DNA of 12,263 bases from Prasinococcaceae sp. CCMP 1430 (Eukaryota; Plantae; Prasinodermophyta). Positions 2,105 through 10,845 of the stretch are shown here, one piece after another (positions within the stretch are counted from its first letter, which is position 1; each line of letters starts with the position of its first letter). A model generated the notes under the pieces. That model saw only the letters and a program-made list of their open reading frames with translations, was not told where the DNA came from and searched no databases. Both the position numbers and the translations under genes were made by a program. Location: assembly GCA_013416795.1 (NCBI GenBank), contig RQSC01000005.1, positions 193,590 to 205,852 of the forward strand, in the 5' to 3' direction.

Positions 2105-2501
2105 TCACTTTGCAGTGCCGCCCTTCCCAGCGACGCCGCTCTCGTCGGGAGCTGCGGCATCGTCGCTATCGTCGCTCACCTTTGGCCTGCACGCGAACCT
2201 TATCGCGCGCGCCTTCTGCATTGCGAGCATGAGGTCGCGAGCCTCGGCGCCACTGACGCCCTTTTGCGCACCGAGCACCACCTGGAGCACGCGCGCGCGG
2301 TCAGAGGTGCCATCACGCGCACGCAGGGCCGCGCACACGTGCCGATGCGCCTGCGGGCGAGGGCAGCGCACGTACGTCGACGGCCTCGTCGCACTTCCCC
2401 TCGTCCACCAGGGCATGGACGCGTTCGGAGAACAAATCGGCGTGCCGCTCATAGAAATTGCGCATGGTGTGCTCGTCTTCACCCAGAGCACTCCCGTCCA
2501 C
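2105..2501 (-). CDS. Hypothetical protein, at least 2 exons, 5' end unresolved
   Basis: An exon encoding ALGEDEHTMRNFYERHADLFSERVHALVDEGKCDEAVD ends at 2376. It joins in phase across a 94-nt intron (2375 to 2282; GTACGT...CTGAC...CCAG) to VVLGAQKGVSGAEARDLMLAMQKARAIRF...GGTAK, stop TGA at 2107-2105. An in-frame ATG lies at 2464, and the frame stays open up to a stop at 2666-2664. I recognise no domain. Confidence 0.6.
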
Positions 2502-2953
2502 CGCCTGGGCAGCGTGGCCGGCAGCACGCAGCGACGCCCGCTCGCCCGTTTCGCCCGCTCCAGCCTTGGCACTGCAGCGGGCGCCCTGCCTTCGGCCCGC
2601 GCGGCGCCCCCAGTGCGCTCCCGCGCGCGCTCCCGCGTTTCTCGCGCCCTTTCCGAACAGAGGTCATTTGCTACCAGGCCACCGGTCCCCCCTCTCCACG
2701 GCGCGCGGCGCGGCGCGCACGAGCTCCGCGGCGCGCCACACGCACCACGCGCGGCACGCAACGCCCCCACCCCGCCTCCTCTCCGCGCGCGCGGCGTGTG
2801 GCACGCGCGCAAGAGAGAGAGGGAGGCGCTCGCTCGACGCGCCTTTTTTCGCCACGTGGCGCTCACACGCCCGCGCGGCGATATTATTTGGCGCGCAAGG
2901 TTTGGGGCCTACCATCAAATGGTACGTGGAATACCCTGGTCAGGGAAGGGGCC

Positions 2954-2976
2954 TTTAGGGAAACTTTATAGGGTTT
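2954..2976. promoter_or_regulatory. Telo-box-like motifs (TTTAGGG; AAACCCTA on the minus strand) overlapping a TATAAA on the minus strand
   Basis: tttaggg at 2954-2960, tttata at 2965-2970 and tagggttt at 2969-2976, within the divergent intergenic region between genes 3 and 4. Function is inferred only. Confidence 0.4.
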
Positions 2977-3058
2977 ACACGAGGCTCAAACTAGATCACT
3001 GTGCACTACGAAGCGTAGTCGGATCGGCCGATCGAGCCGCGCTGCCCCCCCCCCCCCC

Positions 3059-3153
3059 NNNNNNNNNNNNNNNNNNNNNNNNNNNNNNNNNNNNNNNNNN
3101 NNNNNNNNNNNNNNNNNNNNNNNNNNNNNNNNNNNNNNNNNNNNNNNNNNNNN
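3059..3153. other. Assembly gap (95 N) preceded by a C14 run
   Basis: The N run is read directly; the C run occupies 3045-3058. Confidence 0.98.
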
Positions 3154-3229
3154 CGCGCGCGCGGCGGCCGGCGCGCGCCAGGGTGCACCGGCGAGGCACG
3201 CGCGGCGGGACCGGCGGAGATGAGATGGT

Positions 3230-3249
3230 GGGTGGGTGGGTGGGTGGGG
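3230..3249 (+). repeat. (GGGT)4GGGG, potential G-quadruplex
   Basis: Five G-tracts separated by single T, about 280 nt upstream of the protease ATG. Confidence 0.75.
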
Positions 3250-3525
3250 ATGAGGGTGCGCCGGCCGGGCGGTCGGGTAGGCAACCGCGCGGACGAGAGG
3301 CGCGTGCCACTCCCCCACAACACCACACGAACGCGTGCACACGTCGAGGACGCGCCGAGGCCTCTACGTTTCCGGGGCATCCCACGTAGGTAGCCGCGTC
3401 GCGCCCCGCCCGCGTGGACAGGGCCACGCAGCGCGCGGCGACCAGGCCCCGCATAGCAGCGGAGGCCGGGCCACCGCACCCGCAGCCGCCTCGCGCCGCG
3501 CCGAAGTACAGGGGCGCGTGCGAGC

Positions 3526-6525
3526 ATGGGAGTGCAAGCAGTCGCCACCACTCGTGCACCAATCGCTGTGCGACGGCCTCTGGGCCGGCATCCGCCTGCA
3601 GGGCGCGCGCTGGGCTCGCGTGACTCTTCGGCCGCCGGTTGGCACCCAAGCGGGCTCCACTTCGCGCGCATTCTACGCGTGGCAAAGGCATGCGCTTGCG
3701 CCGCGCTTTTGACTGCTGCACCGCCGCGGGGAGTCGGCGCCTTCGAGCTTCCCTCGCCATTGGTCGACGTGAGCTACCTCAGCGGAGGCATTGCCGAGGG
3801 CGAGGCATCCGTGCGCAACGTCGCTGGCACTATCGTCGCGGGGCGGGCTCTCTTCACCGATTCCGTGGCCTATGAGGCACTCGCGGCCTACCGCGAGTAC
3901 CTGGGCGGCCTGGGCGTCGTCACGGTCGCCTCCAACGCTACAGGCACCATCTCGCAGTTGCCTGTCGCTGCGGGAGTCACGGCACAGCTGCGCGCCGTTC
4001 GCTTTGCTAGCGCAGTCACCGACGCCACGCGCTTCGTCGACGGCGCTGGCAGCGCGCTGCCGATGCCCGAGACCATTTGTCTCATCGGCGAGACCGCCAC
4101 GCTGACGTTCGGGCACACCGCCGACCTCACGTACGACAATCCGAATTATGAAGACCCGGCCCCCTCTTCTGCGGGCGCGGGTGCGTCATCTGCAGTGTTC
4201 CCGGTGCACTGCGGCGCGGGATCGGAAGCGCTGGTGTGCGTGACGCCGCTGGGACACGCCGGTGGCTCGAGCGGGCGCGTGGAGTGTGCGGGGGCCACAC
4301 CCAACGCGTACGCAATCGTAGGCGCGATGGCGCCCGCTCCAAAAGACAATCGCACGGCAGCAGAGCTCTCCTCGAGCCTGAGCGCCGTGGCGTATGCGCT
4401 GGACAATGACACGCTGCACCAGACCGACCCCTTCGACAGTTTCCTCTCGGACGATCAGGACGTCAACCTGGCGCAGCTCCTTCCTGGAGACAAGATGTTC
4501 GCGATCTTCGAGGCTGAGGGGCTCGTCGGCGGAGACGAGGACGGGGGTGATCAAGCCCTCGCGCCGGGAGGAGAGAGCCGCCGCCATCTCTCCGATGAAT
4601 CTGGCACGGTTGACTGCATTACACTTGGCGTAGACACCACCCCGGGCATGGCGGGCGACTTCGGTAGCGCCCTGGCCGCAGCAAACTACATCACGCAGAT
4701 CTACGCCGCAGTGTCCCACATCTACCAGCGCGACGCCGGCTACCGGCTGCAGCTGGGCTACGTGCGGATCACTTCCCCAGGAAACCCCGCAGTCGACCCG
4801 TATGCAGGCCTCAGCGGAGTGGGTGAGCTCCTCAGCAAGGTGCACGACACATGGCAAGCGCTGCGCGCCGAGAACCCCGCCATTCCAGAGCAACATCTGG
4901 TGCAGCTGCTTACCACGGACGCCGGCGGCGGCGTCGCCTACCTGAACACGCCGTCAGAGGCCATCCCCCGCACGACGATGTGCACGGGGCGCGCCAAGAC
5001 GAGCGTGGCGGGCATCAGCGGCAGCTGGAATCCCACACTTCTCCCGGTGGACAACCTGAATTCGAACGGCGATCTTTACGTCATCGCACACGAGCTGGGG
5101 CACAACCTGGGCACGCCGCACACCCACTCGTGCGGCTGGTACGTTCCACCCATCGACAACTGCGGCGCGAGCTTTGAGGGGTGCGGCGGCAACCAGTGCG
5201 ACTTCGCGCCTGGAGATGCCACCATCATGAGCTACTGCCACTTCTGCCCGACTGGCCTGAGAAACTTGCGCATGGGCTTTCACGAGCGCGTCAAAGCAGT
5301 GCTCGTCAAGGCGCTCGCCAACACCAAAGACACCAGCTGCGCGGTGTGCGCCGCGCCAGGCGCTGGGGGCGGGAGCACGCCGGCACCGACGCCCGCGCCA
5401 ACTCCGGCGCCCACGGCGGCGCCCACGCCCGCGCCTACAGCCGCGCCCGAGGCGAATACTTGCGAGCCTGTCTGCGTGGTGTCGGGTCAGCACGACGCGG
5501 TGGAAGGCGCACCGTCGGCCATCGACGCGATGAACTACGCTGATTGGCAGCTGTGGCCACGCGGATCGAGCGTGGCCTCCACATATGAATCACGCCGAGT
5601 GTGTTCGCGCGGCCTGAAGGTGAACGCAAGGGCCAAGGGCGGCAGCGTGATCTTCGTGCAGCGCGAGCTGCAGCAGAGCGTCAGCGGCGCGTGCGACGCG
5701 GCCTTCCCATCGTTTGGTGCGCTGGCCGACACCTCCGCGCTCTTCCTCGAGTTCTGGCTGCGCCCGCTCGAGGTGCACTACGGCGCGTCGGGACCGGAAG
5801 GCAACTGTCCGACGCTCAACCCGTGGTCGATGCTCTTCCTCACCACCGTCTTTACCGACACCACCGGACAGGGCAGATCGAACAAATTGGGCTGGGAGTG
5901 GACGCCGCTCATCAGCCACGTGGCCACCACCCACCCACGCGGCTGGGGGTGGCCCACCATCGGCGCTTGGACGCGCTTTGTCTATCCCATTGCGTCTCCT
6001 GCCGACAAGGGGGCGTCGTTCGCGTGGAATCGCCTGCAGCTCGCAAACTTCGACCAGCGCGGCTGCGCGCTGCGTTTTGACATGGACGAGGTCAGGCTGC
6101 TCGTCGGGAGCGCCTGCATCCATGAGGAGGAGTTGCCAGGCGGTGAAGGCAACAAGCAATGCACAGCGAGGACGCTCGATGTGAATGGCGATGGCGCCGT
6201 CGACGTGCTCGACCTCAACGCGCTCGCGGCAAACATCACCGCGAGTGGAGGCTTCTCGTACGATCCCACCGCCATTACCTCAAGTGACAGTGGCGCCTTG
6301 GGGAGTGCCGACGACGGCACCGACGGGGAGGTGCTCGCAGAGCAGGAGACACAGATTGGCGAAATCGCTGAAGCGGTGCTGCGCTTGGCAGACGCCGGCC
6401 AGGCGCATCAGGGTGGCACCAACGCAACCATCCAGGTAACGCCTGTGGAGGAGCTCGTGGTTTCGCCGGCGGCCATGGCCGCATCGCTGCCCGACCCGGA
6501 GGCGCTGGACGGCATCGAGCAATGA
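3526..6525 (+). CDS. Probably secreted metzincin zinc metalloprotease (M12/reprolysin-like) with Pro/Thr linker, CBM-like domain and dockerin/EF-hand-like motif; intronless, 999 aa
   Basis: HELGHNLGTPH (HEXXHXXGXXH) at 5089-5121 and Met-turn TIMSYCH at 5221-5241. Upstream GGGVAYL and AVSHIYQRD resemble reprolysin-like bacterial M12 proteins. There is a hydrophobic signal-like stretch at 3688-3741, (TPAP/TAAP)6 at 5377-5448 and DVNGDGAVDVLDL at 6178-6216. Confidence 0.9.
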   Translation: MGVQAVATTRAPIAVRRPLGRHPPAGRALGSRDSSAAGWHPSGLHFARILRVAKACACAALLTAAPPRGVGAFELPSPLVDVSYLSGGIAEGEASVRNVAGTIVAGRALFTDSVAYEALAAYREYLGGLGVVTVASNATGTISQLPVAAGVTAQLRAVRFASAVTDATRFVDGAGSALPMPETICLIGETATLTFGHTADLTYDNPNYEDPAPSSAGAGASSAVFPVHCGAGSEALVCVTPLGHAGGSSGRVECAGATPNAYAIVGAMAPAPKDNRTAAELSSSLSAVAYALDNDTLHQTDPFDSFLSDDQDVNLAQLLPGDKMFAIFEAEGLVGGDEDGGDQALAPGGESRRHLSDESGTVDCITLGVDTTPGMAGDFGSALAAANYITQIYAAVSHIYQRDAGYRLQLGYVRITSPGNPAVDPYAGLSGVGELLSKVHDTWQALRAENPAIPEQHLVQLLTTDAGGGVAYLNTPSEAIPRTTMCTGRAKTSVAGISGSWNPTLLPVDNLNSNGDLYVIAHELGHNLGTPHTHSCGWYVPPIDNCGASFEGCGGNQCDFAPGDATIMSYCHFCPTGLRNLRMGFHERVKAVLVKALANTKDTSCAVCAAPGAGGGSTPAPTPAPTPAPTAAPTPAPTAAPEANTCEPVCVVSGQHDAVEGAPSAIDAMNYADWQLWPRGSSVASTYESRRVCSRGLKVNARAKGGSVIFVQRELQQSVSGACDAAFPSFGALADTSALFLEFWLRPLEVHYGASGPEGNCPTLNPWSMLFLTTVFTDTTGQGRSNKLGWEWTPLISHVATTHPRGWGWPTIGAWTRFVYPIASPADKGASFAWNRLQLANFDQRGCALRFDMDEVRLLVGSACIHEEELPGGEGNKQCTARTLDVNGDGAVDVLDLNALAANITASGGFSYDPTAITSSDSGALGSADDGTDGEVLAEQETQIGEIAEAVLRLADAGQAHQGGTNATIQVTPVEELVVSPAAMAASLPDPEALDGIEQ
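5377..5448 (+). repeat. Six 12-nt coding repeat units encoding TPAP-TPAP-TPAP-TAAP-TPAP-TAAP
   Basis: The amino-acid repeat is near exact while the synonymous positions have diverged. This is a typical flexible, glycosylatable interdomain linker. Confidence 0.9.
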
Positions 6526-6758
6526 GCGAGAGGAACCGACGTCGCTGTGCGGCACTTATTGGTGCAACCACCGAAACGCGCGCGCAGTACCCGCGCACAC
6601 GAGTCAAAACACGCGCAGGCACGGCGATGCGACCGAGGAGTGCGCTGAAGCGGCGCTATTGTTGCACTGCACGCAGTACTAAAGTGAAGTATACACAGTA
6701 GTACACACATATTTTACGCTGCAGGGGCGGCGACGCGGCCGCGTGGGCGCTGCTCCCT

Positions 6759-8361
6759 TCAGGGTCGTACCGGCAAAAAATCGAGGACGCCCGCGGCTGC
6801 ACGCGCGCCCGTCGCAAACGACGCCGTGAGCAAGTATCCACCAGTGGGAGCCGACCAGTCAAGCATCTCCCCCGCGCAAAAGACCCCCGTGGGCTCGCCA
6901 TCGCTGTTCCATACGCACAGCGTGCGCGCGTCAACTTGCCCGCGGCCGCGCCCGACGCGAACGCCGCCGGCGGTGCTAATGGCCCGCGACAACGGCATGG
7001 CTTCTGCCAGCCTGATGGGCACACCCTTGACAGCCGCCGCCAGGGCGCGAGAGTCGCGAGAAAGCTCGGAGAGAGGAATGGTCGCCGCCGCGCGCTCGTC
7101 TTCGCTGGCGCCTTCTGGCGAGTAGCCATATGCCGCCTCGGCCTCTCTGAGCATGGCCAGAGCCACTGGCGACACGCCGGCTCTTCGCAAGCGCTCCGAC
7201 ACGGAGCGCGTCTTTCGCTTCTTCTTCTTCTTTGGCACACTTCCGTCCTCAGTTGCGCGCGCGCTGGCGGCGGGAGGGGCCAGCTTCGCAGCCAGCGCAT
7301 CCACGCTCAGCCCGGGCCTGAAGTCCACGCGTAGCACCACGGCGTCACCTGCGGGCACGCCTCCGTGGCCGGCCGCGGCCGCGGCCGCGCCTTGCCCCTC
7401 GTCGAGCGCCGCGACCAGCAGATGCCCAAGCGCGTACACCGGCCCGCCCTCGATACCATTCTCTGTTATGACGAGGTCACCGGCGCTCGACTCCGCGCCG
7501 AAGCGCAGTCGCACGTCCTTGCACCAAGCACCCGCGAAGCGCTCGCGGAACACGTCGCCCCAACCGTCTGCGCCGGCTTCACCGACGGCCCTGAACCCGA
7601 CGTTGGCTGGACGCAGCGCGCTGCAGTCGAGCAGCGGACGGCCTGCATCAGCAAGCTGGTGTGTCCACGCGCCATCCGAGCCCAGGCCCGGCCAAGACGC
7701 GCCGCCGAGTGCAAGCACGAGCGCGTCACACTCCCAAGCGAGCCCCTCCTCGGCTGCTCCGAGCTCGTCGACCCGCGCCGCGTCCGAGCCCTCGCGCTCG
7801 AAGCGCAGGCCGATGCTGCCTTGCACCCCCTCCTCCGAGCACGTGGACACGCCCGCGAGGCGTCTCCGGTAGTGCACGTGAACGCCGAGGTCGTTGAGCT
7901 TGCGCATCCACGCGCGCAGCAGTGGCGTCGCGCGCAGCTCGGTGGGGAAGACTCTTCCACTCGAGCCGACGAACGTCTCCACTCCGAGCGATGCGCAGAA
8001 TTCGCGCACAGCGTCGGCGCCGCCGAACGCTTCGACCGCGGCTGCGGCAGCGCCCGCGCCACCACTGCGCTCACCGCCCGCGCCACCGCCCGTGTAGCGG
8101 CGCAGGAACGCGGCGCTAGCCTCCGAATGGGTGATATTGAGCCCGCCGCGCCCGGCCAGGAGGAGCCGCATGCACGGCGCGCTGCGCCGCTCGAACACGT
8201 GGACGTCGAGCCCTTCAGAGGCCTCCGCCAGGCGCTGCGCGCACATGAGTCCGGCGGGGCCGCTCCCGACGATGCACACGCGCCGCCGCCGCCGCTGCGC
8301 CCGCGCCTCCACCTCGCCGCCCCCACCTGCCGCCGGCGCGTCTGCGACGGCCTCGCCGGCT

Positions 8362-8413
<52 letters not shown>

Positions 8414-8449
8414 GCCGGAGGCGGTGTGGCGCGAGCACCGCGCGTGCAT
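6759..8449 (-). CDS. HI0933-family (BaiN/YhiN-like, TIGR03862-type) NAD(P)/FAD-dependent flavoprotein; probable ATG at 8449 out of frame across a G50 tract
   Basis: VCIVGSGPAGLM (GxGxxG at 8250-8267), LLAGRGGLNITHSE, ETFVGSSGRVFP, LVLALGGASWP, AISTAGGV and GVFCAGEMLDWSAPTGGYLLT are all characteristic of this family. No intron is needed. ATG 8449 is in frame only if the homopolymer is 48 or 51 nt long. Confidence 0.9.
8362..8411. repeat. G50 homopolymer (C50 on the coding strand of the flavoprotein gene)
   Basis: Counted directly. Its length is probably unreliable in the assembly. Confidence 0.9.
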
Positions 8450-8709: not shown

Positions 8710-9798
8710 TCACGCCTCGCGGCCGGGCTCGTCCTCATGGTGGTCGCTCAGCAATGAGCTGAGGCAGCTGCTCGTGATGATGAGGGCGGCGCCCGCCCAG
8801 CCGGCTGCGCCCCAGCGTTCCCCGAGCAGCACCCACGCGAATGCGGCGCCCCACATCGGCTCGGCCGCGTACGTCAGCGCCGCTGTCGTGGCGTCGACCT
8901 CTTTCATGGCCTTGATCTCTAGCCAGAGAGTGAGCGCCGTCGAAATCAGGCCGGTGTACAGGATCTCGGGCATGCAGCCGCTCATCATGTCCACCAGATG
9001 CTCACCGTCGCTCGGCAGCACGCCCTGAGCCGCCGCCCACGCGGTGCAAGCCGCCGCCACGGTGGCCATCTGCAGGCCGATCACGGGCAGCGGGTCCTTT
9101 GCGAACATGTGCGCGTAGTGCTCCGTGCGCAGGATGTGGACTCCGAACAGCAGTGCCGAGGTGAGCGCCCACGCGTCGCCCATGCCGAAAGGCGCGGACC
9201 CGCCGGCCTCGAGCAGGCTCACCCCGCCCAGCGCAAGCGCAACGCACAGCCACGTGCACTTCGGGGTCTCTTTCCCGGTCAGGCCGGCGAGCAGCGGCAC
9301 GGAGATCACCGTGAAAGCGCTCAGGAAGCTCACGCGGCTCGCGTCGGCGCTCAGAAGGGCCATCGCTTGCGTCGCGTAGCCGCCCGCCGCCCAGAAGCCC
9401 AGCTCCAGCCCGCCCAGCGCGAGCTGCGGGTCGCGCAGCGCCTTGGTCAGCCCGAGCGGCGCGAGCGCCGCCGCGGCGGTGGCGAAGCGCACCGCCGTGA
9501 AGAGCTCGGGCTCCATCCCGCCCACGCCCTCGGACATCTTGAGGAGCGCCATGTTGGATCCGAAGAGGATCGTGAGCAGGTTCAACATGAGCACGCCCTG
9601 CAGGTGCGCGTCGACCTCGAAGCCGAGGACGGTCCTGCTGGCATCATCGCCGCGGGCGTCGGCGACCGCGCCGGATCCCTCCGCGCCGAGGTCCGCCGCG
9701 TGGCCCTCGAGCTCGGGCACGTGCTCGACGTGCCACCTCTGCGCGCGCGCGGCGGCGCGCTCCCGGCTGGGCACGGCGTGCGCCGCGTACTGCGACAT
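8710..9798 (-). CDS. EamA/drug-metabolite transporter (DMT) family membrane protein
   Basis: About ten hydrophobic helices in two EamA-like halves (LLTILFGSN, FTAVRFATA, SRVSFLSAFTVISVPLL, GDAWALTSALLFGVH, LYTGLISTAL, YAAEPMWGAAFAWVLLGE, GWAGAALII). ATG 9798 has a gccATG context and gives 362 aa. The frame stays open further upstream, so the start is uncertain. Confidence 0.9.
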   Translation of the reverse strand: MSQYAAHAVPSRERAAARAQRWHVEHVPELEGHAADLGAEGSGAVADARGDDASRTVLGFEVDAHLQGVLMLNLLTILFGSNMALLKMSEGVGGMEPELFTAVRFATAAAALAPLGLTKALRDPQLALGGLELGFWAAGGYATQAMALLSADASRVSFLSAFTVISVPLLAGLTGKETPKCTWLCVALALGGVSLLEAGGSAPFGMGDAWALTSALLFGVHILRTEHYAHMFAKDPLPVIGLQMATVAAACTAWAAAQGVLPSDGEHLVDMMSGCMPEILYTGLISTALTLWLEIKAMKEVDATTAALTYAAEPMWGAAFAWVLLGERWGAAGWAGAALIITSSCLSSLLSDHHEDEPGREA

Positions 9799-10108
9799 GG
9801 CCAGCGCGCGCTCCAGCGCCTCGATCTGGGCCGCGTGCGCATCCGCGTGGGCATCCGCCTGCTCGGGCGCCTGCCCGCGCCTGCCGCGCTCGCGCGCGAC
9901 GCCCGGCTCGCGGCGGCCGGTCAACACCCGATCGCTGCGCGGGCGCTGTTCTTTCCGGAAGGTCTCGCGGTGTGCGCTGCCGCGCGCCGGAACCAAAACC
10001 GCGAATTCGCAACCGAACCAAAAATGCAATGGGAACGCCCTCGGCCGGCCGTGCGAAACCCCGGAAGACACCCGCCAAAATTACCAAGTCCCGTTTTTTT
10101 GCACGGCA

Positions 10109-10357: not shown

Positions 10358-10845
10358 ATGGAGGGCCGCACGCCAGCACCGGCGCTCGACGGCCGCGTGC
10401 ACGCGTCCATGATCGCCTCAGGCGACAAGGAGAGGTGAGCGCTCGCTGCGCCTCTCCTGCCCACCCCCACCCCCCGTGCGTGCGCTCTTGTGGGGCGTAT
10501 GGCGGCACCTCTGTCGCGCGCGAGGCCTCTGACACTCGAGGGTCCCCCTCTCGCTGCCTCCCTCGCCCGCGCACCGCGCCCCACCTGCCATCCGTGGTGC
10601 CCGCTACTGCCCGCAGGCTCAAGGCGCAGCTCCGAAGCCGGCTCGTCGAATGCGGCTGGCGCGACGAGCTCAAGGCGCAATGCCAAGAGCTCGTCAAGGC
10701 TCGGGGGTTGGAGCGATTCTCCGTCGACGAGCTTGTGAAGGAAGTGATTCCCATGGCGCAGGCGCGTGTGCCCGACGCCATCAAGGCTGAGACGCTCGCC
10801 GAGATTCGCGCGGCGCTGGCAAAGGCCGATGGGGATGCGCAGTGA
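10358..10845 (+). CDS. ENY2: Transcription and mRNA export factor ENY2/Sus1 (SAGA DUB module and TREX-2 subunit), 2 exons, 101 aa
   Basis: Exon 1 (10358-10434; MEGRTPAPALDGRVHASMIASGDKE-R) and exon 2 (10617-10845; LKAQLRSRLVECGWRDELKAQC...SVDELVKEVIPMAQARVPDAIKAETLAEIRAAL) splice in phase. SGDKERL...L.ECGWRDE and VPD.IK are ENY2 hallmarks. Confidence 0.93.
10435..10616 (+). other. Spliceosomal intron of ENY2 (182 nt)
   Basis: Donor GTGAGC, acceptor CGCAG. The phase-2 junction ag|g restores the Arg of KERLK. Confidence 0.88.

Follow-up and report, generated by a model that had tools for sequence, protein, structure and literature searches.

We analysed a 12,263-nucleotide stretch of the genome of the prasinodermophyte alga Prasinococcaceae sp. 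CCMP 1430 (GenBank assembly GCA_013416795.1, contig RQSC01000005.1, positions 193,590 to 205,852 of the forward strand; hereafter referred to as the window), which carries an open reading frame (ORF) of 999 codons for a predicted metalloprotease. As listed in Table 1, the encoded protein is arranged as a signal-like segment, a pro-region, a reprolysin-like catalytic domain, a Pro/Thr-rich linker, a Trp- and Cys-rich domain and a tail with a dockerin-like loop. The initial annotation, made from the sequence alone, had described a 3-kb intronless ORF with this layout; that description stands, and every motif it quoted, including AVSHIYQRD and GGGVAYL, is present in the translation. The contigs that match the window have no joints inside the ORF, and a search of the assembly index for the exact 999-residue product returned no entry. 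Long ORFs are frequent by chance in DNA of 65–73% G+C, which is the range within the window. This ORF is clearly coding despite that background, because its product scores above the Pfam cut-offs and has an orthologue conserved along nearly its whole length (both described below). Among strain variants, residues 1–880 show six synonymous changes and three conservative ones, and the gene is under purifying selection. From residue 911 to the end, in the dockerin linker and the tail, the strain differences are mostly non-synonymous.

Table 1. Features of the window, with residue numbers of the protease product in the fourth column.
Feature	Position	Strand	Residues	Basis
Protease ORF, 999 codons and stop, ATG start	3526-6525	+		ORF listing and translation; no intron inside
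Signal-like segment	3658-3741	+	45-72	Basic n-region, h-region ACACAALLTAA, then VGA/FE; most hydrophobic window
Pro-region, four conserved Cys, ending at dibasic R352-R353	3742-4584	+	73-353	Conserved in orthologue
Reprolysin-like (M12B-type) metzincin catalytic domain	4609-5349	+	362-608	Pfam; family alignment; adamalysin profile match, E 8e-16
Zinc-binding motif HELGHNLGTPH (H522, E523, H526, H532)	5089-5121	+	522-532	Invariant columns, 22-sequence alignment
Met-turn TIMSYCH (M568)	5221-5241	+	566-572	Family alignment
Gly/Pro/Thr/Ala linker with TPAP/TAAP repeats	5350-5460	+	609-645	Translation
Orphan Trp/Cys-rich domain, about 234 residues, predicted beta-rich	5461-6162	+	646-879	Orthologue comparison; AlphaFold2
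First dockerin-type segment, intact	6178-6240	+		Pfam Dockerin_1, E 9e-4 on tail alone; dockerin hidden Markov model; orthologue conservation
Second dockerin segment, decayed	6307-6390	+	928-955	Bacterial dockerin alignments; degenerate loop, helix retained
Variable acidic tail with conserved patch EE(L/V)..SP..MA..LPD	6391-6522	+	956-999	Orthologue comparison
HI0933-like flavoprotein ORF, converging on the protease gene	6759-8438	-		Pfam, E 1e-47
EamA-family transporter ORF	8710-10071	-		Pfam
EnY2 (transcription/export factor) ORF, 176 codons	10315-10845	+		EnY2 domain at the end of the ORF

The catalytic domain scored above the Pfam cut-offs of Reprolysin_5 (47.8 bits against 27), Reprolysin_3 (40.3 against 22.4) and Reprolysin_4 (30.2 against 22). 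Among 22 family members aligned, H522, E523, H526, G529, H532 and the S-Y-C of the Met-turn are invariant, and T566, M568 and H572 nearly so. The profile of these 22 sequences matches solved structures of snake-venom metalloproteinases, ADAM8, ADAM33 and ADAM17 at E values of 8e-16 to 1e-8, and the protein shares with the adamalysins/reprolysins proper (MEROPS M12B: snake-venom enzymes, ADAM and ADAMTS) the HExxHxxGxxH motif, the Met-turn and the order of pro-domain and catalytic domain with a basic site at their boundary. Unlike those enzymes, it has T rather than D after the third zinc-binding His and leaves Pfam PF01421 unmatched, and its single sequence, used as a query, retrieves no eukaryotic M12 structure, ADAMs included, with an E value under 1. 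Pfam, searched up to an E value of 1, did not find disintegrin, cysteine-rich, TSP1 or transmembrane modules, the protein has no hydrophobic segment beyond residue 66, and the EGF module of the animal enzymes is also missing. We considered an ADAM or ADAMTS identity and ruled it out from the lack of these modules, as the initial annotation had done. By these criteria, the protease is a reprolysin-like metzincin with intact catalytic residues, far from the animal ADAMs.

A single close relative was found, on a Tara Oceans metagenome contig (L001) of 4.3 kb and 68.7% G+C. This relative covers residues 65–990 with the same architecture from signal peptide to tail; its exons, which were compared piece by piece and not as a joined spliced model, are 48–56% identical to the window protein overall and 73–76% identical in the catalytic domain. 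Its coding sequence contains two canonical GT..AG introns, one near 1703–1855 (GTGCGT...CACAG) and one within the linker, near 3114–3235 (GTACGA...CCACAG), together with a third interruption between about 622 and 1464. At this third site, the signal-peptide exon stands about 840 bp from the next coding piece; the other two introns are about 120–150 bp long. Because spliceosomal introns were gained or lost between two species so far apart, the gene must be a long-standing resident of the algal lineage.

The surroundings of the ORF in the window agree with this. The downstream sequence is gapless from the ORF through the HI0933-like and EamA genes to EnY2, a member of a eukaryote-specific family. 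Three other runs contributed pieces that tile across the 3′ junction of the ORF, and the stretch is present in several independent runs. The G+C content at third codon positions (0.79) and the codon use (correlation 0.82–0.86) match those of the neighbouring genes; the bacterial relatives are equally G+C-rich, and composition alone does not discriminate a native gene from a bacterial one. Contaminating bacterial DNA, or a chimeric assembly with a bacterial insert, might be suspected from this uninformative composition, from the exclusively bacterial origin of the non-algal relatives, from the intronless ORF and from an assembly gap of 95 N at 3059–3153, about 370 bp upstream. Such an origin is ruled out by the canonical spliceosomal introns of the orthologue and by the contiguous eukaryotic neighbour genes, and the nearest bacterial sequence is only about 35% identical, so that we consider it extremely improbable. 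A chimeric insert, which the initial annotation had named as a finding that would overturn its interpretation, is refuted by the same introns and by the gapless link to EnY2. The protease gene belongs to the nuclear genome of a marine green alga, a prasinodermophyte, and is native to it.

The tail of the protein contains DVNGDGAVDVLDL at residues 885–897. Its predicted Ca-binding loop, D885–D896, has the canonical ligands D885, N887, D889, D893 and D896 at loop positions 1, 3, 5, 9 and 12 and is followed by the helix LNALAANI; the orthologue, about 55% identical overall, strongly conserves both loop and helix. An exhaustive search of 1.84 billion representative proteins with residues 644–999 returned eight proteins at E up to 0.001. 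Two of the eight are of the alga's own kind, and the other six touch only residues ~840–948. Five of these six consist of five to eight true Dockerin_1 modules, and both of the two that were checked lie on prokaryotic contigs. An independent dockerin hidden Markov model (HMM), built only from the tandem Dockerin_1 proteins of this search, matched the algal tail with 24.2 bits and aligned only positions 2–39 of its 67, which correspond to the first segment and the linker. The two algal sequences do not share the second loop, and AlphaFold2 (AF2) predicts a helix in the second segment at low confidence. These results suggest that the tail derives from a dockerin whose second half has been lost. 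The name 'dockerin-like', given to the tail beforehand, accordingly fits its first half, with the intact loop and the HMM match, and not its second, where the loop is degenerate; 'lone dockerin-like loop' is an apt description, as only the first loop is intact. The tethering to cell-wall or scale polysaccharide that had been proposed is not indicated by our results, and a dockerin-type module would point instead to a protein partner of the cohesin type.

The tail may alternatively be a relic or a generic Ca-binding loop, in which case the enzyme would be freely released to the medium or the wall space and targeted through the orphan domain. This would account for the single intact F-hand and the differing second loops of the algal pair, for the Pfam score below the cut-off, for the mostly non-synonymous strain variants from residue 911 onward and for the lack of a confident dockerin fold from AF2. 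It fits less well with the strong conservation of the first loop and helix between orthologues of about 55% identity, and with the finding that the best library matches of the stretch are true tandem Dockerin_1 proteins. We hold this alternative to be a serious one, at somewhat less than even odds.

Upstream of the catalytic domain, the sole strongly hydrophobic window of the protein spans residues 52–66, about 50 residues after the first ATG, and the lack of any further hydrophobic segment is consistent with secretion. The signal-like segment ends in VGA, followed by FELPSPLVDV, and the 44 residues that precede it are absent from the orthologue. The latter begins with a Met directly ahead of a classical signal peptide, MLFPSSSAAAPLLALLLLLAAVSPPGAGA, followed by ALELPSPLVDV, the peptide ending in AGA at the equivalent place. 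The 44-residue extension is thus of doubtful reality. The window contains no in-frame ATG closer to the signal-like segment, and position 3454 holds an in-frame stop; with the extension lacking in the orthologue and the 95-N gap upstream, the true 5′ end of the gene is uncertain.

The pro-region ends in a motif, RR(H/R)L, that is kept just ahead of the catalytic domain in both algal sequences (RRRL in the orthologue), about 10 residues before the domain starts. Convertase sites in ADAM zymogens lie at an equivalent position. The pro-region had no Pfam match at E up to 10, its comparison by hhalign with some 30 bacterial N-terminal regions of the relatives gave a probability of 1%, and a feature search brought up one ADAM propeptide cluster, a weak and mixed lead. 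Behind the catalytic domain, the repeats at residues 617–641 read TPAP three times, then TAAP, TPAP and TAAP. The '(TPAP)6 linker' of the initial annotation is therefore a Pro/Thr linker as described, and its six perfect TPAP units are not found, as two units read TAAP. A Pro/Thr/Gln linker of similar kind is present in the orthologue, where an intron interrupts it.

The domain that follows has eight Cys and, between residues 674 and 834, ten Trp, and is 58% identical in the orthologue. The exhaustive search described above found no other relative of it outside the algal lineage; scans of Joint Genome Institute (JGI) metagenomes likewise found none, and the catalytic relatives that they returned were of bacterial type only, at about 30% identity. 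There was no Pfam match at E up to 10 and nothing useful in NCBIfam. AF2 modelled residues 644–999 from a four-row alignment as beta-rich, with a predicted local distance difference test (pLDDT) score of 36.8, which is unreliable and too weak for a fold search. A feature search gave scores of at most 0.89 to assorted glycan-binding beta-sandwich families (CBM27, SGBP_B_XBD and Exop_C), which we take as leads only. The domain had been called similar to carbohydrate-binding modules (CBMs). That assignment is without backing in our data; we rejected it, as neither Pfam nor the exhaustive search finds similarity to a CBM family, the domain has no relatives outside its lineage and the AF2 model is of low confidence. 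In the bacterial relatives, the same slot is occupied by varied beta-rich modules (PA14, Big_9, Ig, NHL and FG-GAP). By these comparisons, both the pro-region and the middle domain are lineage-specific.

Beyond the Tara Oceans orthologue, the relatives that were found were all bacterial, with about 26–36% identity in the catalytic domain. In a set with one genome per bacterial or archaeal species, the best matches came from Phycisphaerales and other Planctomycetota (33–36%), followed by Saprospiraceae, Chitinophagales and Flavobacteriales. This bears out the resemblance to M12 proteins of Planctomycetota and Bacteroidota that the initial annotation had noted. Word-index searches gave no eukaryote-labelled relative of the catalytic domain, and all named matches were bacterial. 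On the contigs of two top metagenomic matches, P0002 and P0008, there are plainly bacterial genes, among them those for flagellar rod proteins, EF-P, histidine kinases and DAC.

When 130 catalytic domains were analysed by maximum likelihood, the tree fell into a Bacteroidota-type half and a Planctomycetota-dominated half (Shimodaira–Hasegawa-like approximate likelihood-ratio test, SH-aLRT, 96), with the algal pair in the latter on a stem of 0.59. In a more careful tree of 90 rows, from which long branches had been removed, the Bacteroidota-type rows lay on one side with a support of 97/90 and the split was found in 96% of the bootstrap trees; the algal pair (100/100) again lay on the Planctomycetota-type side. 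C-terminal dockerins followed the same division. An HMM built from one of our alignments (A5) detected them in 15 of 39 Planctomycetota-type bacterial relatives versus none of 14 of the Bacteroidota type, and the independent HMM in 8/39 versus 0/14, these counts being uncorrected for relatedness. Among the bacterial relatives, P0063, P0066 and P0067 (one with a Planctomycetota label) have a C-terminal Dockerin_1 that exceeds the Pfam cut-off. Many Bacteroidota-type relatives carry a type IX secretion system (T9SS) tail, PF18962, instead. The catalytic domain thus belongs to a subfamily otherwise found here only in bacteria, and groups with the Planctomycetota-type branch, in which a C-terminal dockerin is common.

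Because the same bacterial branch carries both parts, joint acquisition of the catalytic domain and the dockerin is favoured over later shuffling; of the two origins offered by the initial annotation, horizontal acquisition and domain shuffling, the latter is the less likely for this pair. The two parts were probably received jointly, long ago, from a Planctomycetota-like bacterium. A bacterial transfer is the simplest account of the data and a plausible one, short of proof. The gene would later have gained introns, a eukaryotic signal and new domains. Vertical descent offers another account, in which an old eukaryotic metzincin was lost from most eukaryotes, looks bacterial through missing or divergent relatives, and had the dockerin-like loop shuffled in within the alga. 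The unrooted tree would accommodate this, as would the long stem of 0.59 with no specific bacterial sister (the pair falls outside all Planctomycetota-type rows in 21% of the bootstrap trees) and the lineage specificity of two of the four domains. We nevertheless judge it unlikely: the word-index searches brought up no eukaryote-labelled relative, the sequence alone matches no eukaryotic M12 structure, ADAMs included, at an E value under 1, and the pairing of the catalytic domain with a C-terminal dockerin is common in the bacterial branch with which the protein groups.

The closest counterparts among described systems come from freshwater Phycisphaerae, in which cohesin and dockerin modules have been described (Andrei et al. 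2019, ISME J, PMC6461901). For these bacteria a 'planctosome' has been hypothesised, and not experimentally shown, in which M12B endopeptidases resembling Reprolysin_4 are held by Ca-dependent cohesin–dockerin contacts (PMC6461901). The peptidases of this type in our set (P0063, P0066 and P0067) share with the algal protein the signature HELGHNLGxxHT ... PID.C ... TIMSYCH, the side of the tree, an N-terminal region of at least 200 residues, a beta-rich middle part that varies and, at the C-terminus, a dockerin-type Ca module with a Cys a few residues ahead of the first loop. Unlike them, the algal protein belongs to a eukaryotic host, with EnY2 nearby and introns in the orthologue; the identity in the catalytic domain is only about 30–36%, the algal pro-region and middle domain are unrelated to theirs in sequence, and the algal dockerin is without the second Ca loop and below the Pfam cut-off. 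T9SS-sorted M12 proteins of Bacteroidota (Saprospiraceae, Chitinophagaceae and Flavobacteriales) are of the same broad catalytic subfamily, with 26–33% identity, and differ in lying on the other side of the tree (97/90) and in having the Por-secretion tail PF18962 in place of a dockerin. In the collection of papers that was searched, none pairs dockerin with Prasinoderma, and the Prasinoderma genome paper makes no mention of dockerins, proteases or peptidases and gives the wall composition as unknown (PMC7455551). What is new here is a eukaryotic relative, intron-bearing in the orthologue, of the M12B peptidases to which Planctomycetota attach dockerins; its own dockerin is decayed, and two of its domains are orphans.

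Several bacterial contigs collected in the course of this comparison had features of their own. At 10826–12388 and 14997–16364 of the Planctomycetota-type metagenome contig L004, two genes with weak Dockerin_1 matches and an FG-GAP protein adjoin P0008, and this gene group resembles a cluster of dockerin-bearing surface proteins as proposed for the planctosome. On a prokaryotic contig, L114, a Peptidase_C25 protein (gingipain-type) with a weak dockerin match lies beside a protein of eight tandem dockerins (2440–4092 and 4250–7003); this pairing, if true, would be another combination of protease and dockerin outside cellulosomes. The M12 domains of L015, labelled uncultured Klebsiella, and L079, labelled Chitinophaga, are near-identical to, or nested among, those of Phycisphaerales. 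These labels are probably binning errors in metagenome-assembled genomes rather than signs of transfer.

Seawater metatranscriptome contigs match the ORF at 4520–4670, 4908–5246, 6188–6338 and 6384–6534 with about 99% identity, differing from it by zero to two letters each; carry-over of DNA is possible for these matches. Among the neighbouring genes, the 3′ end of the HI0933-like gene is covered by a transcriptome-like assembly at 6704–7300. The first exon or the start of the EnY2 gene probably differs from that of the 176-codon ORF, because the EnY2 domain sits at the end of this ORF. The genes upstream of the protease ORF include a GGACT-like gene at 1212–1673 and a P-loop kinase-like gene at 38–595; the linkage of the ORF to them crosses the gap, as the 95 N lie in between. 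A simple repeat rich in GGGT follows the gap near 3225–3250.

The explanation that we favour combines these elements: a native algal gene for a secreted zinc protease with a bacterial-type catalytic domain and half of a dockerin, derived by an old Planctomycetota-like transfer, whose product would be a zinc-dependent endopeptidase made as a zymogen. We give this explanation as a whole a probability of about 0.6. Several points weigh against it. The lack of eukaryotic relatives of the catalytic domain rests on word-index searches, the exhaustive search having covered the C-terminal region. On the Planctomycetota-type side the algal pair has no firm position, as the bootstrap fraction mentioned above indicates, and the tree is unrooted and without a eukaryotic M12 outgroup, so that it gives neither the root nor the direction of transfer. 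About 50 residues stand ahead of the signal-like segment, with the gap upstream, and the case for secretion comes mainly from the orthologue. A small culture transcriptome-like assembly (X3) covers both neighbouring genes and not the protease ORF; expression of the protease in this culture was probably low, since both neighbours are represented. In the tail, Pfam Dockerin_1 (PF00404) stays below its cut-off of 22.9 bits with the whole protein (16.5), with the tail alone (19.8) and with the orthologue (19.3), and the second dockerin segment has decayed. Modelled by AF2 from a 36-row dockerin alignment, the tail shows a loop, a helix, a disordered stretch and a second helix, with a mean pLDDT of 49.8 that is too weak for a fold search. 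Binding to a cohesin is doubtful because of this sub-threshold dockerin score, the decayed second segment and the weak tail model.

Under the explanation that we favour, the protein would enter the secretory pathway and be activated by removal of the pro-region at the conserved Arg-Arg ahead of the catalytic domain. The Pro/Thr linker would form an extended stalk between the enzyme and the lineage-specific domain. This beta-rich orphan domain may bind substrate or wall material, and the dockerin-derived module may hold the enzyme, in a Ca-dependent manner, on a cohesin-type partner at the surface of the algal cell. The enzyme tethered in this way could remodel a proteinaceous wall or digest external protein.

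A more far-reaching idea is that the alga runs a proteolytic surface machine resembling a cellulosome or planctosome, with dockerin-tagged enzymes plugged into membrane-anchored proteins of cohesin fold, and that the whole system was taken up early in Prasinodermophyta from Planctomycetota-like bacteria. We regard this as improbable on present evidence. Enzyme-carrying cohesin–dockerin assemblies are known from bacteria; to our knowledge, those carrying proteases have so far been proposed as a hypothesis only, for Planctomycetota. If the idea is true, the algal system would be the first enzyme-bearing cohesin–dockerin assembly in a photosynthetic eukaryote.

In any case, an alga of a deep green lineage carries the catalytic subfamily of the proposed planctosome joined to a remnant of a dockerin, and the two orphan domains of its protein are targets for structural study. 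If the pieces fit together, it becomes testable how such an alga builds and remodels its wall and uses external protein in oligotrophic water, and whether a eukaryote has domesticated a whole bacterial surface-display system.

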